IMG/VR virus record: IMGVR_UViG_3300049215_000529
Span: 124,001-188,000 of that record
Length of the DNA stretch: 64,000 nucleotides
Strand: one strand, 5' to 3'
The notes beneath the pieces are model-generated. The model was given only the letters and a program-made list of their open reading frames with translations. It was not told the DNA's origin and ran no database searches. Positions 9,112-61,544 of this stretch are shown here, piece by piece. The translations under genes and the position numbers were made by a program. Position 1 is the first letter of the stretch; the number at the start of each line of letters is the position of its first letter.

Positions 9112-9432
9112 TTAATTCAGCTTCTCATCCTCATCAGACTCAAAGCTCAACTCACCTTTTCTATAACCATCCAAAAGTGTTTGCGCCGCTTTCCATGGAT
9201 CGCGCCCGAAAGAAAGTCGCCCATGAGTAAACTGAATTCTTACAATTATGTCTTCGGGACAATTTGAATTTTCTAGCTCTTCCGCTAGCCATAGCCCAGC
9301 AAAACAAACTTCTTTTATAATGGCTGAGGCAAGTAATGGCTTGGGCAAGCGATCATCGTTATCTAAAACATCTTGCCAACGAGCAATGTCTTCTTCTGTA
9401 ACAAATTCTGGTCTTGACATATTATTCCTCAA
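9112..9432 (-). CDS. Hypothetical protein
   Basis: ORF overlapping the tyrS stop. Confidence 0.6.
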   Translation of the reverse strand: MRNNMSRPEFVTEEDIARWQDVLDNDDRLPKPLLASAIIKEVCFAGLWLAEELENSNCPEDIIVRIQFTHGRLSFGRDPWKAAQTLLDGYRKGELSFESDEDEKLN

Positions 9433-10624
9433 TCATAAATCTCTTAAAACTCTTTTTACCCTTTTTCACTATAATCTCTTTGCCAAATTGTGATTTAGAA
9501 ATAATAAGTGTTGGATTATCTAAAACTTGAGTATTAATAGTAATACCTTTATTGTTAATTAGATTTCTTGCATCAGTACGAGACTTAGCAAATTCACATT
9601 TAACAATCAAGTCTAAAACATTAGTATTGTCATCGATAGGCGCGGCTTCCATGATAGACGGATCTTTCTTTTCAAAGAGAGACTCTACCACCTCAAGCGT
9701 GATATCGGTTGCATCTTTACCATGTACGATGGTAGTTAATTCGCAAGCCAATCTTTTCTTTGCCGCATTGATTTCCTCTACAGTAGTAAAGGGTATCGTA
9801 GCAATTTCCTGCAGCGACAAGAAGGTCAGCTGCTTAAAGCACTTCATAACCTCTGCGTCTGGAATGTTACGCCAGAACTGAAAAAAGTCGAAGATGCTCG
9901 TCTGCCCTTCTTCCGATAGCCACACTGCTCCCTTTTCGGTTTTCCCCATCTTGGTTCCATCCGAAGTAGTTAGCAAGGGGATTGTCAGTCCGAAAGATTC
10001 CTTGCCTTCTTTTTTATGAATCAAGTCAATACCAGCCAAAATGTTGGACCACTGATCATCGCCACCGATTTGAAGGATACAATCTCTCCAAACGAATAGA
10101 CGGAAGAAGTCAACCGCCTGCATGAGCATGTAATTGAATTCTAAAAATGAAAGTCCAGTCTCCAATCTGCTTTTGAAGCAATCGGCTCGCAGCATGTTGT
10201 TTACTGAGAATAACGGACCAAACTCTCGAATGAAGCTCAGGAAAGTAAAGTGCTGGAAGAATCTTTTGTTGTTGATGATCTGCCAGTCATCTACGCCCAC
10301 AATCTTTTTAATCTGCGGAGTAATGCTTTTGATGTTCGCTTCTACCACATGTTCTTCTAACATGGGGCGCATGCTACTCTTTCCACTCGGATCACCAATC
10401 TGTGCGGTAGCCCCACCAATTAACATGATTGGTATGTGACCAGCATTCGCCAAGCGTTTAGCAGTAATCATCTGTAATAAGTGCCCTACATGCAAACTGT
10501 TTGCAGTGGGATCAAATCCAATGTAAAAAGTAACTTTCTTTTCATTGAGAAGTTCACGGATCTTTTCCGTGTTGGTTGCCTGTTTCACCAGCCCACGCGC
10601 CTCTAAATCTTCAAATAGTTTCAT
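9422..10624 (-). CDS. tyrS: Tyrosyl-tRNA synthetase (bacterial type)
   Basis: YIGFDPT, HVGH, GDPSG, QIGGDDQW, KMGKT, C-terminal S4-like domain. Confidence 0.97.
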   Translation of the reverse strand: MKLFEDLEARGLVKQATNTEKIRELLNEKKVTFYIGFDPTANSLHVGHLLQMITAKRLANAGHIPIMLIGGATAQIGDPSGKSSMRPMLEEHVVEANIKSITPQIKKIVGVDDWQIINNKRFFQHFTFLSFIREFGPLFSVNNMLRADCFKSRLETGLSFLEFNYMLMQAVDFFRLFVWRDCILQIGGDDQWSNILAGIDLIHKKEGKESFGLTIPLLTTSDGTKMGKTEKGAVWLSEEGQTSIFDFFQFWRNIPDAEVMKCFKQLTFLSLQEIATIPFTTVEEINAAKKRLACELTTIVHGKDATDITLEVVESLFEKKDPSIMEAAPIDDNTNVLDLIVKCEFAKSRTDARNLINNKGITINTQVLDNPTLIISKSQFGKEIIVKKGKKSFKRFMIEE

Positions 10625-11116: not shown

Positions 11117-11191
11117 TGGTATCCCCAACAGGAATCGAACCTGTACTGATCGTTTCGAAGACGATCGTGATATCCTTTTCACTATAGGGAC
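11117..11191 (-). tRNA. tRNA-Arg(TCG)
   Basis: ATCGT-CT TCG AA-ACGAT arm, GTTCGA T loop, encoded CCA. Confidence 0.85.
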
Positions 11192-11228
11192 ATACATCTC
11201 TTATGTCAAGGGATCAATCTCAAAATAA

Positions 11229-11307
11229 GAGCGGTCTTTGACTCGAACGTTTCTCGATGATGAAATTCCGAATATCTGGTTCCTGCATGTAAATGCTTCA
11301 TTCGCTC
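11229..11307 (-). ncRNA. Candidate structured RNA motif, copy A
   Basis: GAGCG/CGCTC closing stem; CGAATG, TTACATG, TCATCA blocks shared with 61624..61743. Confidence 0.4.
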
Positions 11308-11373
11308 ATCTTGCGAATGGGATCCATGCCCCGTCTTTCCTTAAAAGAAACGGCATGACAGCGACGACTGCCC

Positions 11374-11452
<79 letters not shown>

Positions 11453-11456
11453 ATAA

Positions 11457-11894
11457 TTACAAACGTATGCCTTTATAGTAGTTGAATTGCTTTGCTGTTT
11501 TCTTTTTGTGACAGTTGGCACACCTTACGTCACATTTTTGAATTTCTTGTTTTATTGTCTCCAAGCTGAGCGTTCGCATCTCGCTCACATTATAAGTCTT
11601 GTCGCTACGATGGTCAAATTCTAAAACTATCGGATCTGTTTCTCCACAATCAATACATGGATTTTCTTTCAAGTAATCAATCATGAACTGCAAATTACTT
11701 ACTCTAATTTTATAATTGCGTTTCTTTGCTTTCGCAAGGTAATAATCTGTACGTAACTCGTAATGTTCTTTGTGAAGAACAGCTATACATTTCTTGCAAC
11801 GATGCTGAAGTCCGTCTTTCGAGCCAGCTCTTTTATTGAAATGATCTTCTAATGGGGTAGGATAATCTGTTTTACACTTCGTACAAATCTTCAT
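11457..11894 (-). CDS. HNH homing endonuclease
   Basis: CIDCG...LEFDH...CANCH. Confidence 0.8.
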   Translation of the reverse strand: MKICTKCKTDYPTPLEDHFNKRAGSKDGLQHRCKKCIAVLHKEHYELRTDYYLAKAKKRNYKIRVSNLQFMIDYLKENPCIDCGETDPIVLEFDHRSDKTYNVSEMRTLSLETIKQEIQKCDVRCANCHKKKTAKQFNYYKGIRL

Positions 11895-11935
11895 ACAAAG
11901 GATACGAAACTATTGATACATTTCGTATCAAATTC

Positions 11936-12021
11936 TGGCACGCCCGCTCGGAGTTGAACCGAGATAAAGAGTTTCGTAGACTCTTACGTAGACTCTTACG
12001 TAGATCCGCTACGACGGGCGT
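11936..12021 (-). pseudogene. Pseudo-tRNA-Arg(ACG) with a 12-bp tandem duplication in the D/anticodon region
   Basis: Intact acceptor stem, T arm, CCA and AAGAGT-CT ACG AA-ACTCTT arm; CGTAGACTCTTA x2 plus a partial third copy. Confidence 0.7.
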
Positions 12022-12024
12022 ATT

Positions 12025-12099
12025 TGGTATCTCTGATTGGACTCGAACCAACATAAAACTGCTTAGAAGGCAGCTGCCTTTCCATTAGACTACAGAGAC
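12025..12099 (-). tRNA. tRNA-Arg(TCT)
   Basis: GCTGC-CT TCT AA-GCAGT arm, CCA. Confidence 0.88.
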
Positions 12100-12116
12100 A
12101 TAAAACAAAACTTACT

Positions 12117-12193
12117 TGGCATGCCCAGAAGGATTTGAACCCTCAACCTATCGGGTAGAAGCCGATCGCTCTGTCCAGTTGAGCTATGAGCAC
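12117..12193 (-). tRNA. tRNA-Arg(TCT), second copy
   Basis: ATCGG-CT TCT AC-CCGAT arm, CCA. Confidence 0.9.
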
Positions 12194-12213
12194 ATAAAGA
12201 AACCAAAGTTTCT

Positions 12214-12288
12214 TGGTGATCCCTACGGGAATCGAACCCGTGTTAACAGATTGAGAATCTGCCGTCCTAGCCGCTAGACGAAGGGACC
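12214..12288 (-). tRNA. tRNA-Glu(CTC)
   Basis: GCAGA-TT CTC AA-TCTGT arm, CCA. Confidence 0.9.
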
Positions 12289-12319
12289 ATCGTATCTATT
12301 ATATCAGCTTATTAGCCGA

Positions 12320-12517
12320 TTAATGCCATCTAATTTCTTGTGGCTTTGGTTTGCAAACCGCAGGAGAATCAACTCCGTAAAATCCACAATACTCACCACG
12401 AGAACACTCACCATCATTTCCACAGAATTTTGCACCCTTAGGAACCGAACTCATGTCTACTTTATAAGCACATCCGATAACAAAAGCAACTGCTAACAAA
12501 ATTAATACTTTTTTCAT
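12320..12517 (-). CDS. Small Cys-rich predicted lipoprotein
   Basis: Signal peptide with VIGC lipobox; CxxDxECxxGxxC. Confidence 0.6.
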   Translation of the reverse strand: MKKVLILLAVAFVIGCAYKVDMSSVPKGAKFCGNDGECSRGEYCGFYGVDSPAVCKPKPQEIRWH

Positions 12518-12592
12518 TGGTGATCTGTACGAGAATCGAACTCGTGTGACAGCCTTGAAAGGGCTGGGTCCTAACCGCTAGACGAACAGACC
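12518..12592 (-). tRNA. tRNA-Glu(TTC)
   Basis: CAGCC-CT TTC AA-GGCTG arm, CCA. Confidence 0.92.
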
Positions 12593-12594
12593 GT

Positions 12595-12669
12595 TGGTAC
12601 TCCGTAGGGGTATCGATCCCCTTTTTCCTGGGTGAAAACCAAGTATCCTAGCCACTAGATGAACGGAGC
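12595..12669 (-). tRNA. tRNA-Glu(TTC), second copy, ATCGA T loop
   Basis: CTTGG-TT TTC AC-CCAGG arm, CCA. Confidence 0.85.
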
Positions 12670-12678
12670 ATAACTTAC

Positions 12679-12755
12679 TGGGGTGAGCGACGGGATTCGA
12701 ACCCGCTTATCGAGTGGTCACAACACCCGACCATTACCAAATGGAAACGCACACC
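12679..12755 (-). tRNA. tRNA-His(GTG)
   Basis: GGGTG-TT GTG AC-CACTC arm, encoded G-1 and C73, CCA. Confidence 0.85.
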
Positions 12756-12766
12756 ATAAACTTACT

Positions 12767-12843
12767 TGGGGTGTCGTACGGGTTTCGATCCCGTCGAAGA
12801 TTGGTTCACAGCCAACCGGGGTCACCAGCTCCCTCACGACACC
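12767..12843 (-). tRNA. tRNA-His(GTG), second copy, ATCGA T loop
   Basis: GTTGG-CT GTG AA-CCAAT arm, encoded G-1 and C73, CCA. Confidence 0.85.
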
Positions 12844-12910
12844 ATAATCTGGTAATATTCTTGCTTAATTATTAGTATATTTCTATATATCCTAGTTCAA
12901 GGGGTTTTTA

Positions 12911-13318
12911 ATGTCCTACACAATCGAGCAATTATTAACTTTAGCCACTCAATTTGATGAGCTATCTTCGGAGTCTTTGCAGAAAACTGCTGCAAAGAAA
13001 GAGAAAAAGAAGCTAGATCCTAAGGCTGAAGTTCGTAATAGAGGCAACGTTTGTGTTCCAGCTGAACAAGCCAAGGACAAGAAAGACCATTTCCCAATTA
13101 ATAATGCCGATCAAGCACGTAATGCTTTGTCTCGTGTTCATCAATACAGCTCTGTTCCAGAGTGGTACAAAGGTTCTTTGAAGGGTCTTCAAGCTTTAGT
13201 AGCAAGAAAAGTAAAAGCTAAGTATCCAAAGATTGATGTCGGCGGTAAAGATAAGAAATCCAAGAAAGCTGCTTTGGATGAAATCAATTCACTTCTTTCC
13301 AAGTACGCTGCTGAGTAA
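12911..13318 (+). CDS. Basic hypothetical protein with HFPI...ARNAL motif (DUF6582-like)
   Basis: KKDHFPINNADQARNALSR; lone plus-strand gene. Confidence 0.6.
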   Translation: MSYTIEQLLTLATQFDELSSESLQKTAAKKEKKKLDPKAEVRNRGNVCVPAEQAKDKKDHFPINNADQARNALSRVHQYSSVPEWYKGSLKGLQALVARKVKAKYPKIDVGGKDKKSKKAALDEINSLLSKYAAE

Positions 13319-13477
13319 TTCTTTATATTCTTCACCACATCTCTTCTCGTGAGTTTCATAATTCACGACATCAATATTTGTGTGACAAGTAGGGCACTCA
13401 TAGCAGCAAGGCATGATGTGAGCAACATCAAAGTCGCCGTCATGACAATGACAATCACATTCTTCACCGAATAACAT
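13289..13477 (-). CDS. Small Cys/His-rich hypothetical protein
   Basis: CDCHCH and CCYECPTCH; abuts the upstream HNH stop. Confidence 0.5.
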   Translation of the reverse strand: MLFGEECDCHCHDGDFDVAHIMPCCYECPTCHTNIDVVNYETHEKRCGEEYKELLSSVLGKK

Positions 13478-13967
13478 TTATTTAGCCTTCATATTTTTAG
13501 AACAAAAATTATCTGTTTGTGAATGACAGTTAGGGCAAAGGAATCTAAGATTTTCTCTGCGATTATCAAGCCCATTACCATTTTTATGATCAACTTGAAG
13601 AACTAATTTCTTACCGTTCCATTCTGATTTCAAACCACATTCACACTGTTCTGGAACGCCAGACTCTACTAGTGCTCGTTTTATTTTCCAACCATGATCT
13701 CTGCGACCGCCCAGTCTATCAAAAACAAGAATAGTTTCAGCCGATAATTTTGGAAATCCACCTTTATGAGGTTTGCCTTGGTTAGTAGCTAAACCTGTAA
13801 AATGTGAGGTATCTATGTTATAAAGTTTAAATCTGGATTTCAAATGAGAACTGCTGCCACCACTTATCTTTAAACCAAGCTCTCTCATTACCTGCTAGTA
13901 AGAGAAACACTTTTTTAACAATTGGCTCTAATAGTTCTTTGGAATATTTTTGATTGTTCTTACTCAT
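13478..13967 (-). pseudogene. HNH endonuclease with a frameshifted 5' end (intact ORF 13478..13888)
   Basis: LQVDHKNG...NLRFLCPNCHSQT; upstream ATG at 13967 (MSKNNQKYSKELLEPIVKK) is 1 nt out of frame across an A6 run. Confidence 0.65.
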
Positions 13968-13975
13968 TTAGAATC

Positions 13976-14061
13976 TGGTACTACTGGAGGGACTTGAACC
14001 CCCATGCCCTTACGAGCGCAACGTTCTTAGCGTTGTGTGTCTGCCGTTCCACCACAGTAGC
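13976..14061 (-). tRNA. tRNA-Leu(AAG)
   Basis: CAACG-CT AAG AA-CGTTG arm, long variable arm, CCA. Confidence 0.88.
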
Positions 14062-14066
14062 ATAAG

Positions 14067-14152
14067 TGGTGCTATCAGAGGGACTTGAACCCCCACGGGA
14101 TTACTCCCAACAGGTTCTAAGCCTGCCGCGTCTGCCGTTCCGCCATGATAGC
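14067..14152 (-). tRNA. tRNA-Leu(TAG)
   Basis: GCAGG-CT TAG AA-CCTGT arm, long variable arm, CCA. Confidence 0.92.
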
Positions 14153-14156
14153 ATTT

Positions 14157-14233
14157 TGGTGCTCAAGATGGGAGTCGAACCCATAAAACCTACTTTCTGA
14201 GAGTAGTACGTATGCCAATTCCGTCACCTGAGC
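14157..14233 (-). tRNA. tRNA-Leu(CAG) with short variable loop
   Basis: CTACT-CT CAG AA-AGTAG arm, 5-nt variable region, CCA. Confidence 0.82.
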
Positions 14234-14288
14234 GTGATGCCTTTATATATCGTCTTATTCCCAGATTTCTCGGAGAATGTCACCCACT

Positions 14289-14317
14289 AAGATAAGTCGG
14301 CAGCACATGATTGTCAA
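14289..14317 (-). promoter_or_regulatory. sigma70-like promoter TTGACA-N17-TATCTT before tRNA-Leu genes
   Basis: Motif in intergenic DNA. Confidence 0.5.
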
Positions 14318-14338
14318 GACTGACAATTTTAAAATTAA

Positions 14339-14425
14339 TGGTGGTCATGGTGGGAATCGAACCCACACGGGATTGCTCCCAACAGTTTTTGAGACTGCCG
14401 CGTCTGCCTATTCCGCCACACGACC
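14339..14425 (-). tRNA. tRNA-Leu(CAA)
   Basis: GCAGT-CT CAA AA-ACTGT arm, long variable arm, CCA. Confidence 0.92.
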
Positions 14426-24870: not shown

Positions 24871-25752
24871 ATGATCACGGAGCATTATATGTCGCGACCA
24901 AAACGAATTATCACCGAGCAAGAAAAACAAAAAATTGTGGCAGACTACAAAGCTGGCGTATCACTCAAAAAATTGCAAAAAGAAACGAAGTTGCAGCAGA
25001 AGCAACTGAAATTCATTCTTGACCAATTTGATGTTCCAATTCTAACAGCATATGAAACGCAGAGACGAAAAGCGATGTTAGAAGAACGAAACTATTTTGA
25101 CGAGTTAGACGCGCTTCAATGCTATGTGTTAGGGTTGATATTCGGTGATGGATGCGTTCATTACAATCCTAAAAGATACAAATATGCTACAACGATTGTT
25201 AGCAATGATATGGATATCTTAGAAAGTGCCAGACATTTATTAGGGACCAACTTTCCTATTACTAAGAGAAAGAAAGCCAAAGCTTATAACCTTGTCATCA
25301 ACTCCAAACATTTATGCCAAGAACTAATCAATAAGTTTCATCTACAAAGTCCCAAGAGTAGTAAATTGATTTTTCCTAACTTACCACAAGATATGTATCA
25401 GTTCTTCGTTTCGGGACTGTTGAGCACCGATGGGTGTGTCAGAATTGACGACCGCAGAAAAAATCAATCATGTGGTATCGAGTTTTCCTATTCTTCTAAT
25501 TGTTTAGATTTCGTTCAAAAATTGCGTCATTATCTATCTAATACGCTTGATATCGCCGAAGATGGACATATCAAAACGATAAAGCGAAGTAAGAAACGAA
25601 AGAACCCCAACTACTCCTTGCGATACTCGGGAACCAATGCAACTAAGATATTAACTTGGATTTACGAAAATACCTCACCAATAACAAGATGTCAAAGAAA
25701 ATACGATATCTACCGTAATCATTTGGCTTGCGTTTCAAATTCTATAATATAG
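24871..25752 (+). CDS. LAGLIDADG homing endonuclease (two motifs)
   Basis: YVLGLIFGDG and FVSGLLSTDG; convergent overlap with PARP 3' end. Confidence 0.85.
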   Translation: MITEHYMSRPKRIITEQEKQKIVADYKAGVSLKKLQKETKLQQKQLKFILDQFDVPILTAYETQRRKAMLEERNYFDELDALQCYVLGLIFGDGCVHYNPKRYKYATTIVSNDMDILESARHLLGTNFPITKRKKAKAYNLVINSKHLCQELINKFHLQSPKSSKLIFPNLPQDMYQFFVSGLLSTDGCVRIDDRRKNQSCGIEFSYSSNCLDFVQKLRHYLSNTLDIAEDGHIKTIKRSKKRKNPNYSLRYSGTNATKILTWIYENTSPITRCQRKYDIYRNHLACVSNSII

Positions 25753-27203
25753 CGGATACAATGTTGTTGTTCTGGTCCACTTGGCGTATATGTAATCAAT
25801 TCTTCATTATATAGTGACCCGCCTGTTTTAGCCCAAACACTATGTGCTGGGTTAATATTCTTCTTGGTATAGAAGTGAGACTGTTGCGTGATCTTTTGAT
25901 TTCCAAAAGCCACATCTGCTAAAAAGAGATATGCTGTTTTATTTGTTCCTTGAGCCCAGTAGCTACCTCTAACATCACAATAATTCATACTCTTGGTAGA
26001 ATTGGTTGCCCAGTAGATTCCATCCCCAAATGCAGACCCAGCATGGATAACGCCAGAAGGACGAATCAAAAGACCTTTGGTTGTGATACCAATCATGTTT
26101 GCACGACGAGTACCGTGCCATGCAGGAAGAACGTTTGCCTTCTTATAAAGGGCATCCATTTCTTTGGTAATGTCAATACGTTCTTTTACCCACTTAGCAT
26201 ATACTTCAGAAGGAGTGTATTTGCCACATTCCTTAGCAATCTTCTCGGAAGCTTCCATCCAATGCTTGTCTTCATCGTGACGAGCAACACGGAAAACTTT
26301 ATGAGTCTTTAGTTTGCCCAAGCCACCATGATTGCTTGCACGGGTACCATGTAGCATGTTATCAATCCACTTGAACACCGGATCGGAAGGATCAACGTAC
26401 TCCAAATCAGCTTTCAAAGTCGCATACTGCGAATCTACTGCGCTCTTCTTGGAGATAACTGCTTGAACGTTCTTTGCGTCAGCAAAGACGTCGAGAATGT
26501 CGAAAGCTTTATTGAGCTTATCGTCGTCGTCCAAACGTAATACGTCAGCATCAATCTTACGAGGGAGGACGTGAGGAATGTTAGAGTAGTATTGGCTGGT
26601 AAGCTTATTCAACTCCTTGACGTCAGGCTTCTTGACGTGGATTTGCTTACGAGCTTCATCCAGAATTTGTTTGGCGAAATCAATTTGGGTTAACGACAAT
26701 TGACCCAATGGACACTTGTTGGTATCAAGGTTCAATTCAACGAACTCTTGTGTAACGCCGAACCAAGTACGAACTAAGTCCTGCACTTGCGCATGAAGTT
26801 TACTAGCCGATTCGTCTTTCTCAGTGACAGTTGCGCCCAATCGTTTGAGAGCTTCCACAGAAACGGTAGAGTCTACTTTAGATTTACCCATATCAGAGCC
26901 AACGTCAGCCTTAACCAACTTGACTTCAACATAGCCCTTTTTGGTTTTGGACTTGATAATCTTCTCGGCTTCTTTTTCGGCATCAGCCTTATCTTCGCAG
27001 ACACGATACTCTTTGGCGCCAGAAACACCAACACGCCCATACTGCGTATAGATATAGTACTTACCATCATTGGATTCAATCAACTCCAAGTTGTAATACT
27101 TGTTATTGTTATTGATGATGTCAGTAAAATTTAGAGTATAACGCTTAAAAACGTCTTTGATGGAAACTTGAAGTTCATCTTCTCTGATAACAGGCTTAGC
27201 CAT
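25719..27203 (-). CDS. PARP with WGR, regulatory and catalytic domains (start MAKPV)
   Basis: YYNLELI...QYGRVG (WGR-type); CPLGQLS...TSQYYSNIPH (regulatory); WHGTR, FGDGIYWA, YNEELITY (H-Y-E triad). Confidence 0.9.
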   Translation of the reverse strand: MAKPVIREDELQVSIKDVFKRYTLNFTDIINNNNKYYNLELIESNDGKYYIYTQYGRVGVSGAKEYRVCEDKADAEKEAEKIIKSKTKKGYVEVKLVKADVGSDMGKSKVDSTVSVEALKRLGATVTEKDESASKLHAQVQDLVRTWFGVTQEFVELNLDTNKCPLGQLSLTQIDFAKQILDEARKQIHVKKPDVKELNKLTSQYYSNIPHVLPRKIDADVLRLDDDDKLNKAFDILDVFADAKNVQAVISKKSAVDSQYATLKADLEYVDPSDPVFKWIDNMLHGTRASNHGGLGKLKTHKVFRVARHDEDKHWMEASEKIAKECGKYTPSEVYAKWVKERIDITKEMDALYKKANVLPAWHGTRRANMIGITTKGLLIRPSGVIHAGSAFGDGIYWATNSTKSMNYCDVRGSYWAQGTNKTAYLFLADVAFGNQKITQQSHFYTKKNINPAHSVWAKTGGSLYNEELITYTPSGPEQQHCIRYIIEFETQAK

Positions 27204-33718: not shown

Positions 33719-34363
33719 TTATCCTACGGTCGGCTCCTGTAGCTCGATAATGGTACTATATCGAGTAATCAGGTGCCTTATTTCATCTCTTACTACAGTG
33801 ATATTTGACAAATACATCGGAGGACAAATTTGCATCATCTGATCAAACAATGGAAAATACTTTTCCTTGGTTTCTTTAACTTGCTTTTTCTGGAATTCGG
33901 GAGTCGTTCCAGGAATCATTAAAGAACGTAGGTTGTCTAGGCGGTCGCAAGCCTTGAGGGCAAGTGCCTTCCAATTTTTACAGTTGTTTAGACGGTCAAG
34001 ATATCCCTCTTTAGGGACCTTGCTCAGGACCTTGACTAAGGATACTACTTCGGTTCCAAAGCAATGCTCTAATAGTTCTGGCGACAGGTCCTGACAATCC
34101 TCGATAGAGTCGTGAAGTAAAGCTGCAATAATCATGTCTTTATCCATGATTTTCATTTCATCCATTAGGACAATGGCAACTCGGCGAACGTGCTCGAAAT
34201 ATCGAGTAGGTTTTCCGTCCGTAAGTTCTTTTCTAGTCTGGGCACGATGCCCGAATTTGGCTAGAGTATATGCGAGTTTGACGTCAAGCTGATCCGAAGG
34301 GCTAAAGTAAGGTCTAATTCTGGATTGAAACGTTTCTTTATTTTCGGTTGCCATATAATTCAA
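33719..34363 (-). CDS. RelA/SpoT-type HD domain, small alarmone hydrolase-like
   Basis: H..QTRK...YFEH...[10 protein letters not shown]...KACDRLDN. Confidence 0.82.
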
Positions 34364-34922
34364 TTATCTCCTCAGCATATTTTAGTAAATCTTCTATTCT
34401 TTTACCGCAGGGCTGTTTTGTGCTCCAAAGTTCAAGATTTTCTAGCCTGTTATCATCCCTGTTGCCATTTTTATGATGAACATTCTCACTTTTTAAAAGA
34501 GATCTGCCCAAATATTTTTCCATAACGTATCTGTGTTCAAGAATATATTTACCATCTCTATATACTTTTCGGTAACCACCAGATTTTATTGAGCCATCTC
34601 TACCAGATTTATCAAACCTTTTGGTTCCTCTTAAAGGAATATTGTGCTCTTTTAATACAATGTACAGCTGTTCAGAACAGATTTTGAACTTGTTTTTGAT
34701 TTGATTTATAGTATTTTTCTTATCAAGATACAAATTAATCAATTTAGTTTTTTCACCTGGTTTCCACTGCCTTTGATTGTGAGCAATTCTAGTTGGCTTA
34801 TCAGTAGTTCCGTGACGTTTCCAGCGCCTATAATGCAAATCACATAAATCTCGCGCTACAACTTTTTTATTACAATCTGGTATATTACAAAACCTCATAC
34901 AAGTATGGGGCAATATTACCAT
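34338..34922 (-). CDS. HNH homing endonuclease
   Basis: CxxHY Zn finger; EHRYVM...[16 protein letters not shown]. Confidence 0.85.
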
Positions 34923-34985: not shown

Positions 34986-35321
34986 TTAATCAAGCTCGGT
35001 GGAGGCATCGCAATCTTTTTCGTCCTGCCATATTTTTAAAGCATCAGCACGTGATATCTTAAAGTGTCTAAGAAGAGCCTCTAATAAAATATAGTCATTT
35101 GCCTCTTCTTTACGACAAATACAACAGCTATATCTTGTGTTATCGTAATCATCATCGTTCTCATCATTATTTTCGTCCTCACCCTCTTCTTCGTCTAAGG
35201 GTTGTGGGTCAGCACATTTGTTTGAACAAAATTGATTGGAACATTCTTCGCAGAAATAGTAGTTTCCACAATCAGGAAAGTTACGACTACAATTTGCACA
35301 TGTATAAAAATCAACACCCAT
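34986..35321 (-). CDS. Cys-rich hypothetical protein
   Basis: CANC, CEEC, CCIC. Confidence 0.6.
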   Translation of the reverse strand: MGVDFYTCANCSRNFPDCGNYYFCEECSNQFCSNKCADPQPLDEEEGEDENNDENDDDYDNTRYSCCICRKEEANDYILLEALLRHFKISRADALKIWQDEKDCDASTELD

Positions 35322-36424
35322 TATCTCATCTCCACTTCTAGTTCTGAAACGAGCCTTTTTCTAATGGCTCTTTGTATTTTTTCTACTTCTGAGTTTTTTA
35401 GAGTTGTATCAATAGAACGATAAGTCACTCTGTAGCAATGCGAGGTTTTATCCTTCTTTTTAAACTGATCGATTAGTTCAATGGACTCAATGTAGTTGAG
35501 CTTATCTTCTTCACGGGCAATGCTACAGAAGTCATTGTATGTGAATTTAGGGCTAAGATAGAATGACACATCCTTATAGCACATCTCATACTTAGAATAG
35601 GGCTTGAATTTGGTAATCTTGCCAGCCTTGAATTGATCTAAGAAACGCGGGTCAGTGCTCCAGAATAGTCGAATATCAGGGATATCGAACATAACCATTG
35701 CCAATCGCTCTAACCCAAGACCAAATGCCCAGGCTTGAGTACCTGGTAAACCAAGGTCTTTCATGATATCGGGGTGAACGGTACCCGCGCCAAGGATTTC
35801 TAGGTCTTTAGTTGACCCATCTTCCATCTTGAACTTGACCTCTACTTCCAAAGAATCAACTGTAAAAGGGAAGTAGATGTTTTTGTGCTCTGAATCCTCT
35901 AAAAATCGGAAGACACACTTATCACCGAATAGGTGTTTTACCAGTCCTGTTAATCTTTTACGCAAATCCTTCTTAACATCAGTGCCAGGATCTACGATGT
36001 AGAAGGCATCCATCTGATGGAAAGCTGGATAATGGGTCGCATCAATGGCGTCTTTTCGATATACATCACCACAGGTAATATATCGAAGTCTACTTTGACC
36101 ACTGTTAGTATGACCAAGTGGATACAAATAGCAAGTCATGTGTGTTCTTAATACAGTCTTTTCATCTAAATAGAATGTATCAGATGGGCTTCTAGATGGG
36201 TGATCTTCGGGAACACGTAATCTATCGAAATTATATTCGATAGGTACATATGGATTGTCAATATCGATTTTGGCTAAATCCGAAAAGTACTCAAATACCT
36301 TCTCTTTAACAATGGCAATCGGATGATTTGGCTCATTGTACAGATTCTTACCAATTTTTTCGATAATACTGCTAGGGATGTTATTCATAACGTACTTTTG
36401 ACTTTCCAGATTTCCTTTAGCCAT
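35321..36424 (-). CDS. pheS: Monomeric organellar-type phenylalanyl-tRNA synthetase (catalytic plus FDX anticodon-binding domain)
   Basis: NHPI, HPSR..DT.Y, LRTHMT, YRKDAIDATHYPAFHQ, AFGLGLERLAM, DIRLFWS; C-terminal SHCYRVTYRS. Confidence 0.93.
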   Translation of the reverse strand: MAKGNLESQKYVMNNIPSSIIEKIGKNLYNEPNHPIAIVKEKVFEYFSDLAKIDIDNPYVPIEYNFDRLRVPEDHPSRSPSDTFYLDEKTVLRTHMTCYLYPLGHTNSGQSRLRYITCGDVYRKDAIDATHYPAFHQMDAFYIVDPGTDVKKDLRKRLTGLVKHLFGDKCVFRFLEDSEHKNIYFPFTVDSLEVEVKFKMEDGSTKDLEILGAGTVHPDIMKDLGLPGTQAWAFGLGLERLAMVMFDIPDIRLFWSTDPRFLDQFKAGKITKFKPYSKYEMCYKDVSFYLSPKFTYNDFCSIAREEDKLNYIESIELIDQFKKKDKTSHCYRVTYRSIDTTLKNSEVEKIQRAIRKRLVSELEVEMR

Positions 36425-36954
36425 TTGACTGTGCCGTCCGGTGTGGGATGAACTCCATCACCCAGTGGTATGTTCAAGCTCTCTGTATCAATGTAAGCAC
36501 AAGTTGGAGTGACTTTATTTTTTAATAAAGTGTTGATGACATGTTTTTCGCCATGTACGGCGGTTGGTCCCACCCAAATACACTTGAGGTGACGGGCGGT
36601 AACTTCGTTTAATATTCGCTGTACACTTGGTAACCATGGAAAATTGAAATTAACCGTTCCCAAAAAGATGATTACCACATCAGTTCTAGGAGATTGATTC
36701 AGTGCTTCTGTGAAATGACCATCATTCCAATAGGTAATTGGCGTACCACCCTTGTAATGAACTGTAATTGTCTCATTAGGCTGCCTGACGTCATTAAGTT
36801 TCCAGCTGGCATAGCCAGCAGTAGAATCTCCCACTATTGTAATGTTTTGATGTGGAGGAGCAACATCGGTTCCGGCATCTTCTTCTGATAAATTAGATGA
36901 AGAGGCTACTGATTGGCACCCCAAAATCAATGGTAAAAGATAGTACAGTCTCAT
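36385..36954 (-). CDS. SGNH-hydrolase lipoprotein
   Basis: LGC lipobox, GDS, G.VN, DGVHPT. Confidence 0.75.
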   Translation of the reverse strand: MRLYYLLPLILGCQSVASSSNLSEEDAGTDVAPPHQNITIVGDSTAGYASWKLNDVRQPNETITVHYKGGTPITYWNDGHFTEALNQSPRTDVVIIFLGTVNFNFPWLPSVQRILNEVTARHLKCIWVGPTAVHGEKHVINTLLKNKVTPTCAYIDTESLNIPLGDGVHPTPDGTVKWLKEIWKVKSTL

Positions 36955-37505
36955 TCTTCACCCTCATCTATTTCAACAGGCGGGAGTGGATTACTTGAAT
37001 GCCATTTCAAGGCACAAGTAATCTTTTGCCTAGATTGCCAACTTTCACGGCAACGACCATCTGTATAACCAGAAAGCTTATCCAAAGGATTAATTCTTGG
37101 ATTTAGACTTGTACACCAATTGAAGCTTCTTTCAACAAAGTTCAAAGCAAACCCTGCTGCATCTGATAAATTATTGCAAGTTTGAGCCTTGCTGGTATGT
37201 GTTTGCCATGGACCAAAGGCGATACCATTATCACCATTTCGTTTACAGGTAACAGCATTTTTCTCGTATCCAGTTTCAGTAGAGGCAATGGAGGCTAACA
37301 GTAAGGCAGTTTTTACCTTTCCATCATCTCCGCTAAACACAGGAGTACGAGATTCGTCTAGGGCGACCGTCGCCATAGCAAGCGCAATTTCACAATACCT
37401 TAGCAAAGTAGAATCTTCTTTTTCATAATACGAGTGTTCTTTGAGTGGCACCCATGAAACCATGGCTGTCAGCAAGTAACTCGCTAACATAATAACTTTA
37501 ATCAT
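36951..37505 (-). CDS. Exported lysozyme/transglycosylase-like protein
   Basis: Hydrophobic N-terminus; SIASTETGY followed by GPWQ. Confidence 0.45.
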   Translation of the reverse strand: MIKVIMLASYLLTAMVSWVPLKEHSYYEKEDSTLLRYCEIALAMATVALDESRTPVFSGDDGKVKTALLLASIASTETGYEKNAVTCKRNGDNGIAFGPWQTHTSKAQTCNNLSDAAGFALNFVERSFNWCTSLNPRINPLDKLSGYTDGRCRESWQSRQKITCALKWHSSNPLPPVEIDEGEE

Positions 37506-37514
37506 GACATGTCC

Positions 37515-38615
37515 TTATTTTCCTGTTCCCAGGAATTTTTTAATGGATGGCAAGATTTCATTTCGGTTGTTAATTTCACTTAAAATCACCTTATCCTTTT
37601 GAGAAGTCCCAAGAAAGGAGGATTCTAATACTTTGAGGAAATTACCAGTTCCCGAATTAACCTGACCATAACAAAATAAATTGGAGTTAGGGATGATTTT
37701 CGACTCTAATAAAGAGACCGCAACTGCATCATCTGAATCTCCCCAATTGTCTCCGTCACTAAAGTGGAATGGATATACATTATATTCAGCAAATGGATAT
37801 TCATTTTCCATCATAGTGGCACAGAATTTATACGCAGAAGAAATACTAGTACCACCTGATTCAGAGATAGTGAAAAACTGCTCACGATCTACTTCTGATG
37901 CTACTGTATCATGGATAATGAATCGGGATTCAATATCCTTGTACTGATATTTCAGCCATAGATCAATCCAAAATACTTCAGATTTAACTATGTGCTTTTG
38001 TTCGGCTCCCATTGAACCAGATACATCCATCATATAGATAACGACAGTATTGATATTTGGTTCTTCAATAGGAATAGCGGCACGATATCTCCTATCAGCC
38101 TTGATAGGAAACATCCCAGGTTTTCCTGGTTCATAAGTGCCAGAAGCGATATTTCGCTTCAGCATCTCTTTGTAGGTTCTTTTGAAGTGTTTGAGTCCTT
38201 CAGAACCTACCGTTCTAATTCCAGTATATTTGTTTTTACTGGAGGCAATTTTACCTTTGCCCTTCTCATCAACATTTGGAAGAGATAGTTCTTCGCTCAA
38301 AAGTTGAGCTAGTTCATCGGCAGTAAATTCGGCTTGATAGCCATGCTGACCCTCATCATTACCAGCCTTACCTTTTCCTTGACCAGGCTTGCCTTGACCG
38401 TCAATTGGATCACCGTCTTCACCTTCTCCTTGACCTGTACCACCACCATGACTGTGGGTAAAATGGGGCAGGTCAATACTATCAATTGGAATTGAAACGC
38501 GCTTATTTCCCTGCTGTCCGATTAACTGATCGGAGCTTACATATTTGCCAAGGTTGTGCTTTACCTTATTTCGAACGATGTTTTTAAAACGACCAACATC
38601 CTGATCTATTTTCAT
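37515..38615 (-). CDS. yeaH: YeaH/YhbH (DUF444) VWA protein
   Basis: D..RF..IV, MMDVSGSM, HDT.A.EV, GGT..SS, HFSDGDNW. Confidence 0.88.
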   Translation of the reverse strand: MKIDQDVGRFKNIVRNKVKHNLGKYVSSDQLIGQQGNKRVSIPIDSIDLPHFTHSHGGGTGQGEGEDGDPIDGQGKPGQGKGKAGNDEGQHGYQAEFTADELAQLLSEELSLPNVDEKGKGKIASSKNKYTGIRTVGSEGLKHFKRTYKEMLKRNIASGTYEPGKPGMFPIKADRRYRAAIPIEEPNINTVVIYMMDVSGSMGAEQKHIVKSEVFWIDLWLKYQYKDIESRFIIHDTVASEVDREQFFTISESGGTSISSAYKFCATMMENEYPFAEYNVYPFHFSDGDNWGDSDDAVAVSLLESKIIPNSNLFCYGQVNSGTGNFLKVLESSFLGTSQKDKVILSEINNRNEILPSIKKFLGTGK

Positions 38616-39496
38616 TTTGGTGGAATCCTTGTAGCAAGTACAGTCGTTTCCAGATCTCCCACAGCTTTCACCATGTCATTAAATCTTTTGCTTACGTAGA
38701 CATGCTTTTCAATATAGCTTCTATCCTGTGAAAAGATAGGGATTTCGTTATCTACTACCCACTCAGTACGCTCTGCATTGAATACTTCACCAGTTTTGGG
38801 GTTAGTGCCCTGTTTCATCACTTTGGTCTTGACAATACAGCGACCACGTTTTTGAGAGGTTGGACAGTCATTCCAGTTGATACCCTTTTGGAAACATAGT
38901 TCTTGTAGCTCAGAATTACCTTTACCCTCTAATTGTTTGTGAGAGTATAGAGTACAAGCTAGCATTTGAACTGAGTTTCGGGTGGCATCCTGTTGGCGCC
39001 ATAGAAAATAGTTCACCACTTCTTCTTTCGGAACAATGAAGGCGCGGCTATCGAAATAAGCTGGTCTGTTGAAATCACACTCACTCATAGGATCGGCACC
39101 AGCATCAACTTCAGCGGAAGTTTTGGGCGCCCAAATTTGCCAAGAGTTCATTGTAAACGTAACCGATGCCATTGATGCAGAAATACTAACCATCTTCTGT
39201 AGGTTATTATCAAACCATGATTGGGTGTCAACGTCTGTATAATTGTTTAGCAGCAATGAAATCTCATCAGATTGCACATAGGCAATTTGACAGCCTTGAA
39301 CATGCTCGCAAAGATACTTTGCGGTTTCGTTCATACAATCGATCAAACCTTGATCTAGAGGTCGCTTACAGCCCTTGGTGTAAGTATGAAATGCTTTGCC
39401 GTCAATACGAAGAATAACGGGCATTCTAATGGGCAAATGTGTCCTATAAGCATCCTCATAGGATTTCATTCTGTCGCCTAGATTATCATTGCTCAT
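38612..39496 (-). CDS. Thg1-like 3'-5' tRNA guanylyltransferase
   Basis: RMKSYE, RIDGKAFH, YVQSDEISL, FDSR, YFLWRQQDA.RN. Confidence 0.93.
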   Translation of the reverse strand: MSNDNLGDRMKSYEDAYRTHLPIRMPVILRIDGKAFHTYTKGCKRPLDQGLIDCMNETAKYLCEHVQGCQIAYVQSDEISLLLNNYTDVDTQSWFDNNLQKMVSISASMASVTFTMNSWQIWAPKTSAEVDAGADPMSECDFNRPAYFDSRAFIVPKEEVVNYFLWRQQDATRNSVQMLACTLYSHKQLEGKGNSELQELCFQKGINWNDCPTSQKRGRCIVKTKVMKQGTNPKTGEVFNAERTEWVVDNEIPIFSQDRSYIEKHVYVSKRFNDMVKAVGDLETTVLATRIPPK

Positions 39497-40381: not shown

Positions 40382-41021
40382 TGTAGTATTTATTGTAAAG
40401 TTCGATAAATGGTTTGTTTTCATTTTTAAGTTTGATATTGAATCCAGCAGGCACTCCAGTAGATAAATAAGCCTGACATTCATCCACGTAGACATGGGAA
40501 GTATATCCGATGCGTTTCAAGACTTTAAACATAGAGTTTCGAAAATTAGGCTTAAGTTCACTGACAAGAGTAGCCATTTCCTTTTTATATTTCGGAATCA
40601 AATAAAACATACCATGAGCCACTTCATGCTTCATGGTAAATAGATTCTTTGTTTTATTGCCAGTAGAACCAATAAGGTAAAAATCGCCTCCAGCTTTTTG
40701 GCTGCAAGCGGCATGTACATCTAACATGACTTGATCATACTTGTTTTTATCTGGAATTCCCAAGCTATGAACCATGGTAATGACATTGCTTGGGACATTG
40801 AACCCCGCCCAATCTAGTGGATAAGTAAAAGAGCCATTGCCAAAAGTTTCAGAATACCACTCCATAAAATCTACCAAACTAAAAGCGTGATTGCGAAATT
40901 TAGGATTGGGCGACTCATAATACTCTTGATATCGCAAGAAATGCATGGCGCATTGATATGGGTCTTTGAAATTCAGATGAAAAATCTTTGGCTTAACTTC
41001 TTTAACAGTAAAATGTCTCAT
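40374..41021 (-). CDS. Hypothetical protein with HExxH
   Basis: KHEVAHG. Confidence 0.6.
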   Translation of the reverse strand: MRHFTVKEVKPKIFHLNFKDPYQCAMHFLRYQEYYESPNPKFRNHAFSLVDFMEWYSETFGNGSFTYPLDWAGFNVPSNVITMVHSLGIPDKNKYDQVMLDVHAACSQKAGGDFYLIGSTGNKTKNLFTMKHEVAHGMFYLIPKYKKEMATLVSELKPNFRNSMFKVLKRIGYTSHVYVDECQAYLSTGVPAGFNIKLKNENKPFIELYNKYYNA

Positions 41022-41470
41022 TTTAATACCTGTAGTTTTTTAATAACTTTGGGAACTTGGCTTTTCTTCATTGGCCAAAGTCCAATAACTGTTTCACTCA
41101 TAGGAGCAATTTCAGTCAAACCAGCATCCACCACAAGAACAAACTTGTTTGGAAATTCAGCTTTGATCTTGTCCCATTCTTTATCATCAGCTTTTAAAAC
41201 AACTTTACGAAAAGATTCATCAAGCCACGCTTTAAAAGACGTAACTAACGAAGGGTCATGCTCTGGCTCCCAACCACACAAATTGTTTGCTTCATTTTCC
41301 GAACGAAAAGTGTCGTACTTTAACTGAAGCATTTGGGAAGCATGCGCACACTGTGCTGCCGTTTTACCTATACCCATGCCTAATGACTCTCGTACGATTA
41401 GGTACATTACAATAGGGTCTTCTTGATTAGCTCGCTTTGCAGCTGCCTCTGATGAATCCAGTGGTTCCAT
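41018..41470 (-). CDS. Peptidyl-tRNA hydrolase, Pth2 type
   Basis: GKTAAQCAHA, KVVLK, DAGLTEI, TVIGLWP. Confidence 0.92.
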   Translation of the reverse strand: MEPLDSSEAAAKRANQEDPIVMYLIVRESLGMGIGKTAAQCAHASQMLQLKYDTFRSENEANNLCGWEPEHDPSLVTSFKAWLDESFRKVVLKADDKEWDKIKAEFPNKFVLVVDAGLTEIAPMSETVIGLWPMKKSQVPKVIKKLQVLK

Positions 41471-45054: not shown

Positions 45055-45969
45055 TTACCCTCTTGGAAAGAATGAAGAATCAGATCTGTTGAATAATTGA
45101 CTGTCTAAAGCAATAAGCTTATCGAAGTCTTCTACCGCATAGAAAGCAGGATCAATGGCTTTCATGCCATATTTTGCGCCAAATAAGGCGCCGACAATAG
45201 CGGCAGTCGTGTCAGTATCTCCACCAGCCTTGATAGCAGTTACCACTGCATCATAGTAGTTATCAAACTTCAAGAAGCAATATAGTGCTGCTGGAACTGT
45301 TTCTTGAACGTTAGCCTTGGTACCAAGTACCTTGAGAGCTTGCCGTGGGCTAATGTGGTCAGAGCTAATCAAAGCATCTAAACTATAGACAGTATTCTTT
45401 ACCTTACTATCTGGCAAGTGAGCCCAAATCTTTTCTAACAAATTGTCAGAATCATCATTGACAGCGTAATAAGCTGCCACTGCAATAGCAATCGAACCAG
45501 CCTCAGCATCTGGTGATACGTGGGTGATAGCACTATCAACTTTACAGATATCGACTAATGATTTGAGGTCATTGCGGAAATAGACTCCAAATGGTGCGGA
45601 GCGCATAGCGGTACCATTGCCAAGAGAGCCAACAATACCAGATTCACTCCAATGTTTGCCAGAAGTCAAATTCTGAATTGCCATCAAGGTAGTTTTGCCC
45701 CAACCTCTAGCTCGACCAGAAGTCATCCAATCTACGTACCTAGCAGACAAATCGTCTGGATTGAAACCACGATTCTCAATTAGAGATTCGGCAACCATCA
45801 AACTCATTTGAGTATCATCTGAGTATTGTCCTGGTTGTAGCTTATGGTGTTCACTACCCAAGAAACTTTTGCCATCCCATTCCAATAAGGCTGGGTTGTT
45901 TATTAGCTTAGTTTCAAACGGAACGCCAAGTGCATCTGCAACAGCTGTTCCTAATAGTACGTTACTCAT
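45055..45969 (-). CDS. ADP-ribosylglycohydrolase (DraG/ARH family)
   Basis: DALG, YSDDTQM, GNGTAMR, TH, GGDTDT. Confidence 0.93.
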   Translation of the reverse strand: MSNVLLGTAVADALGVPFETKLINNPALLEWDGKSFLGSEHHKLQPGQYSDDTQMSLMVAESLIENRGFNPDDLSARYVDWMTSGRARGWGKTTLMAIQNLTSGKHWSESGIVGSLGNGTAMRSAPFGVYFRNDLKSLVDICKVDSAITHVSPDAEAGSIAIAVAAYYAVNDDSDNLLEKIWAHLPDSKVKNTVYSLDALISSDHISPRQALKVLGTKANVQETVPAALYCFLKFDNYYDAVVTAIKAGGDTDTTAAIVGALFGAKYGMKAIDPAFYAVEDFDKLIALDSQLFNRSDSSFFPRG

Positions 45970-49160: not shown

Positions 49161-49187
49161 ATTAACCTCGCTCTTCTTTAGAGCATG

Positions 49188-49212
49188 CATTCGTCCTCTC
49201 AATGAGAACTTG
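49188..49212 (-). promoter_or_regulatory. Conserved dyad/hairpin upstream of natV
   Basis: CAAGTTCTC-ATTGA-GAGGACGAATG. Confidence 0.65.
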
Positions 49213-49215
49213 CAT

Positions 49216-57861: not shown

Positions 57862-58262
57862 AAAAATACTTTCAATCGATTAATCTTGTGAACAACTTTT
57901 AGAATGTGACAAATTTTATCAACAATCTCATTAGGAGAGTTAGAGTCAAATGTGGCTTCGTAATGATCAATAACAAATATTTTTTTGATTTCTTCTATCT
58001 CTTGAAACCTGTTATCAATAAGTGGTACAATAGTTTTCTCTGCGATGATTTCGCCCTCTTTGTCACGCGTCAATTCAGTTAGACTAAGTGTGACAGTGCG
58101 CCCGGTTTGGCTTCCTTCCGGTCTAACTACTTCTGCTATGACCTTGTAGTGCGGTAAGACTAGATAGTAATTGACCTGAGGAAGCGTACTTATATAGAAC
58201 GCTGCCTGCTTTCTAAACTTAGAAAGGTCTAATTTTTCACCAAAATCTAATCGTAATTTCAT
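57858..58262 (-). CDS. Hypothetical protein (start MKLRL)
   Basis: ATG shares its A with the tRNA CCA. Confidence 0.6.
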   Translation of the reverse strand: MKLRLDFGEKLDLSKFRKQAAFYISTLPQVNYYLVLPHYKVIAEVVRPEGSQTGRTVTLSLTELTRDKEGEIIAEKTIVPLIDNRFQEIEEIKKIFVIDHYEATFDSNSPNEIVDKICHILKVVHKINRLKVFL

Positions 58263-61521: not shown

Positions 61522-61544
61522 ATTTTAACAGCTTTGCACTTACT

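Follow-up and report, generated by a model that had tools for sequence, protein, structure and literature searches.

Huge tailed phages carry a conserved gene for a probable single-chain, mitochondrial-type phenylalanyl-tRNA synthetase

INTRODUCTION

Phenylalanyl-tRNA synthetase (PheRS) is, to our knowledge, the textbook exception among the aminoacyl-tRNA synthetases (aaRSs), a large heterotetramer encoded by two genes everywhere but in organelles. Bacteria normally need both pheS and pheT, which together specify ~1,100 amino acids (aa), and we know of no settled account of the source of the one-chain organellar enzyme. Here we analyzed a stretch of 64,000 nucleotides (the window), which corresponds to bases 124001 to 188000 of a 204,190-bp IMG/VR virus record (IMGVR_UViG_3300049215_000529, hereafter G000; 47% complete according to CheckV). 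An earlier note, made from the letters of this stretch, had pointed to an open reading frame (ORF) for a single-chain PheRS of the mitochondrial and plastid type (PheRS-M). We propose that this gene probably encodes a working enzyme of that type, conserved in a lineage of huge tailed phages.

The organellar enzyme has been described in detail in humans. In human mitochondrial PheRS (mtPheRS), Phe232 and Phe234 stack on the ring of the substrate, and Arg117, His119, Thr120, Ser121, Gln157 and Glu159 line the amino acid and the adenylate (PMC5521548). G34 of the tRNA is read by Asp364, Phe366, Ser375 and Arg414, and the D364G substitution kills activity (PMC7540514). Huge phages have been reported to carry up to 15 aaRSs per genome, which are related to host enzymes, in a study that makes no mention of PheRS or of a mitochondrial-type form (PMC7162821). 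A phage origin has also been proposed for the mitochondrial RNA polymerase and replicative DNA polymerase (PMC4558845).

RESULTS

Domains, residues and predicted fold

The ORF as first described (35321 to 36424, minus strand; 367 aa) was present with the two strings quoted from it, NNIPSSIIEKIGKNLYNEPNHPI and SHCYRVTYRS; residue numbers below follow this ORF. Pfam assigned aa 26 to 265 to the tRNA-synt_2d core (PF01409, E = 7e-53) and aa 277 to 367 of the same ORF to an FDX-ACB domain (PF03147, E = 3e-16), which confirmed the fused anticodon-binding domain proposed in the earlier note. Against the NCBIfam equivalog model for the mitochondrial enzyme (TIGR00469, pheS_mito), the protein scored 267.5 bits (cutoff, 258.35), and other phage-context members of the family scored 264 to 308 bits. 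The scores on the models for bacterial PheS alpha (TIGR00468, 171 bits; cutoff, 237.45) and for PheT (TIGR00472, 54 bits; cutoff, 403) were below the cutoffs. An identity as bacterial PheS alpha was rejected, since the protein is without the N-terminal alpha domain and has an extra C-terminal FDX-ACB domain, besides scoring below the cutoff.

The closest solved structure by sequence was human mtPheRS (E = 1e-71), in an alignment that spans from the N-terminal segment to the final residue. The N-terminal segment aligned with residues 28 to 50 of the mature human protein, Pro49 included, and P23 of the phage protein was invariant in 50 family members. Mapping via alignments indicated that the phage protein retains R93, H95, the motif-2 R123, Q137, the Phe-ring pair F185/F187 and the motif-3 R240, with D139 also among the mapped core residues. 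The G34 contacts D319, F321, S328 and the C-terminal R367, equivalent to human D364, F366, S375 and R414, were present in 6/6 phage-clade sequences. No targeting presequence was found in the protein, which begins 1 to 3 residues ahead of the conserved NI(P/T)xSI segment; eukaryotic members carry ~20 to 470 additional N-terminal residues compared with it. This is expected for a phage protein and makes it a member of the family, not an organellar protein. On every testable feature but the targeting presequence, the phage protein belongs to the PheRS-M enzyme family, and the reading of its N-terminus and core as those of the mitochondrial or plastid type held.

The second-best NCBIfam match was SrmL (NF051887; 200 bits, 196 in a second run; cutoff, 300), a "PheS-related mystery ligase" that likewise has a core fused to a C-terminal domain and is of similar length. 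A genuine SrmL (423 bits) is encoded by another huge phage, the 634,780-bp uncultured phage LR745206.1 (L140:2944-4023). The phage protein might thus be a diverged paralogue with another substrate. We consider this very unlikely, because its score lies 100 bits below the SrmL cutoff, it is 26% identical to the SrmL of LR745206.1, and the latter is without the DHPSR residues, the F-P-F pair of the Phe pocket and the G34 contacts, all of which the phage PheRS keeps. SrmL also stood on a very long separate branch in the trees described below.

An AlphaFold2 model of the PheRS, built from an alignment of 50 sequences, had a predicted local distance difference test (pLDDT) value of 95.4 and a predicted template modeling (pTM) score of 0.91. 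Over its full length it matched the closed form of human mtPheRS (3CMQ) with a TM score of 0.88 and the open, tRNA-bound form (3TUP) with 0.66, and it matched eight reviewed Swiss-Prot organellar PheRSs with TM scores of 0.88 to 0.90. In Foldseek structure-based alignments the identity was 44% with Arabidopsis Q94K73 (TM score, 0.90) and 35 to 36% with human mtPheRS. Bacterial PheS alpha chains superposed on the core of the model alone (TM score, ~0.58). No viral PheRS fold was found in BFVD.

The gene almost certainly starts with its second ATG (M13; position 36388), such that the product has 355 aa and the ORF was drawn 12 codons too long. Three observations agree on this start: the best 120 homologues are all ~354 to 355 aa long, the six extracted phage-clade PheRS genes have MNNI or MSNI at their N-termini, and an ATGA overlap with the upstream gene is formed at that position (Table 1). 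The ORF of the earlier note was therefore correct as an ORF, and its length as that of the product was not. The gene overlaps both of its neighbors.

Genomic context and distribution

The gene is phage borne, as had been supposed. The contig encodes a portal protein (phrog_16240, 1.6e-51), a large terminase (phrog_675, 7e-55, with a Pfam match to GpA_ATPase) and a protease domain of the head-maturation type. It also encodes SbcC, Topo IA and a Pol III alpha of the DnaE type. Coding sequence makes up 91% of it, and 87% of its genes share one strand. Five contigs with 72 to 75% identical PheRS homologues measured 462 to 480 kb, which fits the CheckV completeness estimate. Of the words sampled from 6.5 kb around the PheRS gene, 99% were present in four runs labelled as moss metagenomes. 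The contig is that of a tailed huge phage from moss metagenomes. Because of its PARP, Kelch, PTH2 and Thg1 genes, and of the amoeba-symbiont labels of metagenome-assembled genomes (MAGs) with related sequences, we also considered a giant eukaryotic virus, which was ruled out by the portal, terminase, protease and DnaE genes, the 91% coding density and the one-strand layout.

The best 120 matches among 5.8 billion proteins were all 70 to 100% identical to the phage PheRS. In IMG/VR, an identical copy was found on a second record (130 kb, G002), along with relatives of 70 to 71% identity, one of them on a 268-kb contig (G001). A megablast search with 12 kb against GenBank phages gave zero matches, and tblastn returned core-only PheS alpha matches and one SrmL, and nothing else. 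No PHROGs family has the architecture of a core with an FDX-ACB domain; the sole match, phrog_19793, covers the core only and is annotated as "unknown function." Our literature search, within the library searched, returned no account of a phage or CPR single-chain PheRS. Clearly, sequence databases already contain such proteins, which have gone unremarked.

Two short contigs among ~185,000 prokaryotic species genomes carry close, full-length relatives (73 to 74% identical), namely, JBFWUT010000061.1 in a "Ca. Berkiella" MAG (L002) and CAIJXB010000029.1 in a "Chlamydiae" MAG (L003). In addition, a 73% identical PheRS on a 65-kb contig is filed under the moss genome "Sphagnum balticum" (P0058), probably a similar misfiling. 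With such labels, and with eukaryote-like genes in its neighborhood, the PheRS could be a cellular gene (bacterial, organellar-type from a moss-associated eukaryote, or from a giant virus) on a misassembled or misclassified contig. The chance of this is in our view close to nil. L002 and L003 are short and collinear with the phage, with neighboring genes 65 to 81% identical, so they are phage fragments that were misbinned into, or contaminate, the MAGs. The portal, terminase, protease, DnaE and Topo IA genes stand on the same densely coding 204-kb contig with its one dominant strand, the PheRS gene overlaps both neighbors, and the neighborhood recurs on the 130-kb, 268-kb and 480-kb contigs as well as in four independently assembled runs. 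BFVD held no PheRS fold like that of nucleocytoplasmic large DNA viruses (NCLDV). The earlier note had allowed for close homologues being common in the chromosomes of the host lineage; in the ~185,000 genomes there were none beyond the two misbinned pieces, all other matches being ordinary PheS alpha with 33 to 41% identity over the core alone.

The phage PheRS gene is under strong purifying selection, as judged from substitutions among the phage-clade genes. Synonymous sites were saturated (pS, 0.76 to 0.94), with pN values of 0.15 to 0.22, and the single unsaturated pair gave a dN/dS of 0.049. The order Thg1-PheRS-HD_4-NAD-dependent ligase was kept on at least seven independent contigs whose PheRSs are 70 to 100% identical, including L002, L003, L082 to L087 and a 480-kb contig. 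Between Thg1 and PheRS, the window has three genes (36385 to 38615, minus strand) that are absent from the 480-kb relative; they encode a DUF444/YeaH-like protein (5.5e-81), a 184-aa protein of no assigned family and a weakly SGNH/DUF459-like protein. An HNH endonuclease gene is inserted between PheRS and HD_4 (34338 to 34922, minus strand). With inserts on either side of PheRS, the conserved module appears to be a local insertion hot spot.

No PheT, beta subunit or editing module was found in G000, G001 and G002, records that are 30 to 62% complete; the TIGR00472 model matched the FDX-ACB domain of the PheRS itself alone. The absence of a beta subunit from these three related phage records and the conserved contacts with the tRNA anticodon fit with one gene being sufficient, as we infer.

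Relatives and phylogeny

An exhaustive search of 1.84 billion representatives returned 266 proteins at an E value of ≤1e-30. Some of these are compact and have no N-terminal extension, and the others are longer by 20 to 470 residues at the N-terminus; the long ones that bear labels are proteins of animals, fungi, chytrids, ferns, Vitrella and MMETSP protists. Among the compact ones, P0123 is encoded on a 494-kb phage-like contig with a T4 RNA ligase, PNKP, homing endonucleases, a terminase fragment and, two genes upstream, a GlxRS. P0148 (160 kb), P0131 (31 kb) and P0273 (340 kb, of a lineage with P0128) also lie on phage-like contigs, and P0139 and P0134 lie on short contigs of ambiguous origin.

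Single-chain proteins were found in bacteria too. The deep-branching P0241 (L097:10001-11245) is in an ordinary chromosomal neighborhood of an Oligoflexia MAG (G003), which also has a full canonical PheT. A family of ~381-aa proteins with the core and the FDX-ACB domain occurs in CPR/Patescibacteria (Wolfebacteria, Staskawiczbacteria, Nealsonbacteria, Portnoybacteria and Paceibacterota), exemplified by P0359 (L133:8001-9143), P0348 and P0284 to P0402. Their genes are on contigs of up to 785 kb and adjoin the housekeeping genes gyrB, secE-nusG-rplK and gatB. The ESM Atlas has 58 clusters with this architecture, the nearest of which are bacterial (Minisyncoccota, "Ca. Altimarinota"). The single-chain gene was detected in 4/124 genomes from the phylum to which the Oligoflexia MAG belongs and in 0/14 control genomes. 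The (alpha-beta)2 tetramer that the earlier note gave as the form of bacterial PheRS is therefore not universal, given this large single-chain family in CPR/Patescibacteria and a few Oligoflexia.

A quick tree and a careful maximum-likelihood (ML) tree with bootstraps were built and rooted on canonical PheS alpha, and an approximately unbiased (AU) test was run; many of the rows are unlabelled metagenomic proteins. The single-chain PheRS family was monophyletic (support, 100/100), as was the bacterial single-chain clade of CPR/Patescibacteria and a few Oligoflexia (100/99). All phage-context and eukaryotic proteins formed one clade (99/93), sister to the bacterial one, and in it the phage clade of the window (100/100) fell within a group of 11 rows (99/93) that includes the 494-kb phage. 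On these trees, the phage proteins are the nearest non-eukaryotic relatives of organellar PheRS among those found here. Within the phage and eukaryote clade, the backbone support was 28 to 73. Several phage or compact lineages diverged before the eukaryote-containing group in the ML tree, and the verified phage rows were monophyletic in 0% of the bootstrap trees; phage monophyly was nevertheless not rejected by the AU test (p-AU, 0.25). Eukaryotes were monophyletic in 39% of bootstraps, with a core eukaryote clade supported at 82/71. The outgroup branch was long (~1.6), and adding SrmL gave just another very long branch. The insertion that follows motif 2, ahead of F-P-F, is confined to certain lineages of eukaryotes and thus gives no direction of transfer. 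As the inner branching order is weak and phage monophyly is allowed, these trees are compatible with transfer in either direction. The tree that the earlier note had proposed as a check made phage and eukaryotic proteins closest relatives and left the order within their clade weakly supported. The gene does bear on the origin of organellar PheRS, as the note had said, and an origin via viruses, as one of two or more scenarios, is compatible with the trees.

It is conceivable, if rather improbable in our estimate, that eukaryotic organellar PheRS descends from a phage gene and that phages are the older reservoir. The phage and eukaryote clade excludes the bacterial single-chain clade, and the early branching of several phage or compact lineages, with the phage rows together in none of the bootstrap trees, points the same way. 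The gene moreover occurs in no fewer than four distinct lineages with a phage context (the 480-kb clade, P0123, P0128/P0273 and P0148) plus P0131, the phage proteins are compact as the bacterial ones are, and there is a precedent in the phage-like replication and transcription enzymes of mitochondria (reviewed in PMC4558845). On the other side, the backbone values and the AU result equally allow a simple sister relationship, eukaryotes are themselves together in few bootstraps, and the unlabelled rows, the long outgroup branch and the lack of a diagnostic indel among those found all weaken the case.

Alternatively, phages may have taken the gene from a cell, be it a lost or unsampled donor, a single-chain bacterium related to CPR or Oligoflexia, or a eukaryote, and their nearness to eukaryotic PheRS would then come from shared descent from such a donor or from capture of a eukaryotic gene; this is plausible, and we put it a little short of an even chance. 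A large cellular single-chain family exists in housekeeping loci of CPR bacteria and in a few genomes of the phylum of the Oligoflexia MAG, huge-phage aaRSs are generally related to host enzymes (PMC7162821), and phage monophyly is left unrejected. The contig also has genes of a eukaryotic flavor (PARP with WGR and PARP_reg, Kelch, PTH2 and Thg1). Nevertheless, no sampled bacterial protein falls inside the phage and eukaryote clade, the ~185,000 prokaryotic species genomes hold no close homologue save misbinned phage pieces, and the phage proteins, which have no presequence, branch outside the core eukaryote clade.

Other genes of the phage

The coordinates of the PheRS gene and of associated features are given in Table 1.

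Table 1. Features of the PheRS locus and of the translation-related genes in the window
Feature	Position in the window	Strand	Remarks
Single-chain (PheRS-M type) PheRS gene	35321..36388	-	355 aa; stop codon 35321-35323
Start of N-terminal segment common with organellar PheRS (MNNIPSSIIEKIG...)	36350..36388	-	Continues via NLYNEPNHPI into core
Class II PheRS catalytic core, motifs 1-3	35630..36349	-	Pfam PF01409 and residue mapping
C-terminal FDX-ACB (ferredoxin-fold anticodon-binding) domain	35324..35596	-	Pfam PF03147; G34 contacts D319, F321, S328, R367
ATGA junction	36385..36388	-	PheRS start overlaps stop of upstream gene (36385-36954); read from sequence
TAATG junction	35319..35323	-	PheRS stop overlaps start of downstream 111-aa gene
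Downstream 111-aa gene	34986-35321	-	PHROG match phrog_6884
HD_4 phosphohydrolase (RelA/SpoT-type HD domain)	33719..34363	-	Conserved downstream neighbor; Pfam HD_4 4e-13
Thg1-type tRNA-His guanylyltransferase	38612..39496	-	Conserved upstream neighbor of PheRS; Pfam Thg1 1.9e-30; phrog_4717 3e-94
PTH2-type peptidyl-tRNA hydrolase	41018..41470	-	Pfam PTH2 5.5e-23
Tyrosyl-tRNA synthetase (TyrRS)	9422..10624	-	Pfam tRNA-synt_1b 7e-71; phrog_9270 1e-125
tRNA array (Arg x4, Glu x3, His x2, Leu x4)	11117..14425	-	ARAGORN

Among the aaRS families searched, PheRS and TyrRS alone were found on the 204-kb contig, and both handle look-alike aromatic amino acids; the Pfam families tRNA-synt_2b, tRNA-synt_2, tRNA-synt_1 and tRNA-synt_1c had no member on it. 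The relative G001, which is 62% complete, gave no TyrRS. An RlaP nucleotidyltransferase is also encoded in the window. A second Thg1 paralogue is present at G000:C1:91787-92572 (minus strand), ~25% identical to that of the window, and the same phage has two tRNA-His(GUG) genes at 12679 to 12842 of the window.

ARAGORN called 32 tRNA genes on the contig, 19 of which are in the window. All 32 are on the minus strand, where genes for the same amino acid (Arg, Glu, His, Leu, Gly, Val, Ser) stand together and isoacceptors are often duplicated; further stretches in the window are at 58262 to 58409 and 61444 to 61899, and one call is a tRNA-Ser with an unusual ACU anticodon. The relative G001, whose PheRS is 70% identical, gave 53 tRNA matches and encodes a tRNA-Phe(GAA) with A73 and an encoded CCA (L104:1263-1338). 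An amber-suppressor tRNA of 92 nt with a CUA anticodon, labelled "Pyl" by ARAGORN, is present at G000:C1:199329-199420 and also in G001. The stops of the 274 predicted genes on the contig are TAA (171), TGA (93) and TAG (10). Wholesale recoding of TAG is unlikely, as the coding density reaches 91% under the standard code; partial or late TAG read-through is possible.

The phage also has a complete glyoxylate-shunt pair of nearby genes on the minus strand, malate synthase (14482 to 16053, 3e-109) and isocitrate lyase (ICL; 16566 to 17798, 2e-102). This pair seems established in phages, since the Atlas cluster of the ICL itself is mostly Uroviricota. Phages predominate in the Atlas cluster nearest to the ICL, and Pseudomonadota and Actinomycetota come next, so that no host could be called from it. 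A set of NAD and ADP-ribosylation genes, all on the minus strand (25719 to 27203, 45055 to 45969, 46699 to 48099 and 48147 to 49223), comprises a eukaryote-like PARP (WGR, PARP_reg and catalytic domain), an ADP-ribosylglycohydrolase, NAMPT and an NMNAT-Nudix fusion. This set for NAD salvage and ADP-ribosylation may counter NAD-depleting host defenses.

DISCUSSION

The gene described here combines the core, the anticodon-binding domain and the key residues of organellar PheRS with the setting of a phage genome. If the protein acts as its relatives do, its class II core would activate Phe with ATP, with F185 and F187 on either side of the ring of the substrate. The C-terminal ferredoxin-fold domain would read G34 of the GAA anticodon via D319, F321, S328 and R367 and, by analogy with the human enzyme, would swing from a closed to an open position, which would bring the CCA end of the tRNA to the active site. 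The enzyme would presumably work as a monomer. As there is no B3/B4 editing domain, the active site would be the sole means of discrimination against tyrosine. In an infected cell, the enzyme may keep tRNA-Phe charged independently of the host PheRS. The tRNA may be that of the host or the phage's own, the latter being a candidate substrate because a close relative encodes one. The PheRS would belong to a translation-maintenance module, with dozens of tRNAs, TyrRS, the two Thg1 paralogues, PTH2, RlaP and the HD_4 hydrolase, and its benefit would be independence from the host PheRS at one third of the coding cost of pheS and pheT.

Several observations weigh against our proposal of a working PheRS. 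The margin over the pheS_mito cutoff is just 9 bits, and two active-site positions are unlike those of the human enzyme, with Met for Thr120 and Asp for Glu159. Both variants recur in other family members; Asp at the position of human Glu159 is found in 8/8 bacterial single-chain proteins, 9/18 other compact proteins and 6/18 proteins of the eukaryote clade. No tRNA-Phe turned up in what is sequenced of this phage (the 204-kb contig and the 130-kb record G002), no RNA runs were listed as carrying the gene, and the proposal is built on sequence and a structure model. The benefit to the phage is a matter of conjecture.

Nevertheless, a one-chain PheRS emerges as a conserved and selected gene in a widespread lineage of phages of ~0.5 Mb, with members in several other large phages as well. 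It would be another case of a phage with a stripped-down substitute for an essential host enzyme. At 355 aa, presumably independent of a beta subunit and from a bacterial context, the protein could be considered for use in minimal translation systems and in the engineering of orthogonal pairs.

The question of where organellar PheRS came from becomes a testable problem with three candidate sources, a phage, a CPR-like bacterium and a eukaryote, and with real sequences to sample. One specific scenario is that an early eukaryote captured its mitochondrial and plastid single-chain PheRS from a large phage, the CPR enzymes being a more distant cellular branch; we regard it as doubtful at present. 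If it were true, this would be the first part of the translation apparatus to join the T7-like RNA polymerase, Twinkle and Pol gamma as phage captures, and huge phages would be the surviving reservoir.

Compared with canonical (alpha-beta)2 PheRS, the phage protein has a homologous core (33 to 41% identity) and an FDX-ACB domain homologous to domain B8 of the beta subunit. In contrast, the N-terminal coiled coil of alpha, domains B1 to B7 of beta, including the B3/B4 editing domains, and the second gene are absent. The bacterial single-chain family shares with it the two-domain architecture, the catalytic and G34-contact residues and the compact spacer, whereas identity is 36 to 39%, and the bacterial proteins are chromosomal, have ~30 extra N-terminal residues and score about equally on the SrmL and pheS_mito models, near or below both cutoffs.

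The closest likeness is to human FARS2 and Arabidopsis Q94K73, with which the phage protein has in common a single chain composed of the N-terminal segment, the class II core and the FDX-ACB domain, as well as the F-P-F Phe pocket, the motif 2 and motif 3 Arg, the D/F/S/R residues that contact G34 and the absence of editing domains. It is without the insertion of 30 to 140 residues that animals and fungi have after motif 2. Unlike organellar PheRS, it is encoded by a phage, in a gene that overlaps both neighbors, and would presumably act in the bacterial cytoplasm. As for the huge-phage aaRSs of Al-Shayeb et al. 2020 (PMC7162821), they too come from large phages with dozens of tRNAs and translation genes, and the role proposed for them, to charge tRNAs while host translation is taken over, could be the same. 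Unlike those enzymes, the phage PheRS has its nearest relatives outside phages among the organellar enzymes of eukaryotes.

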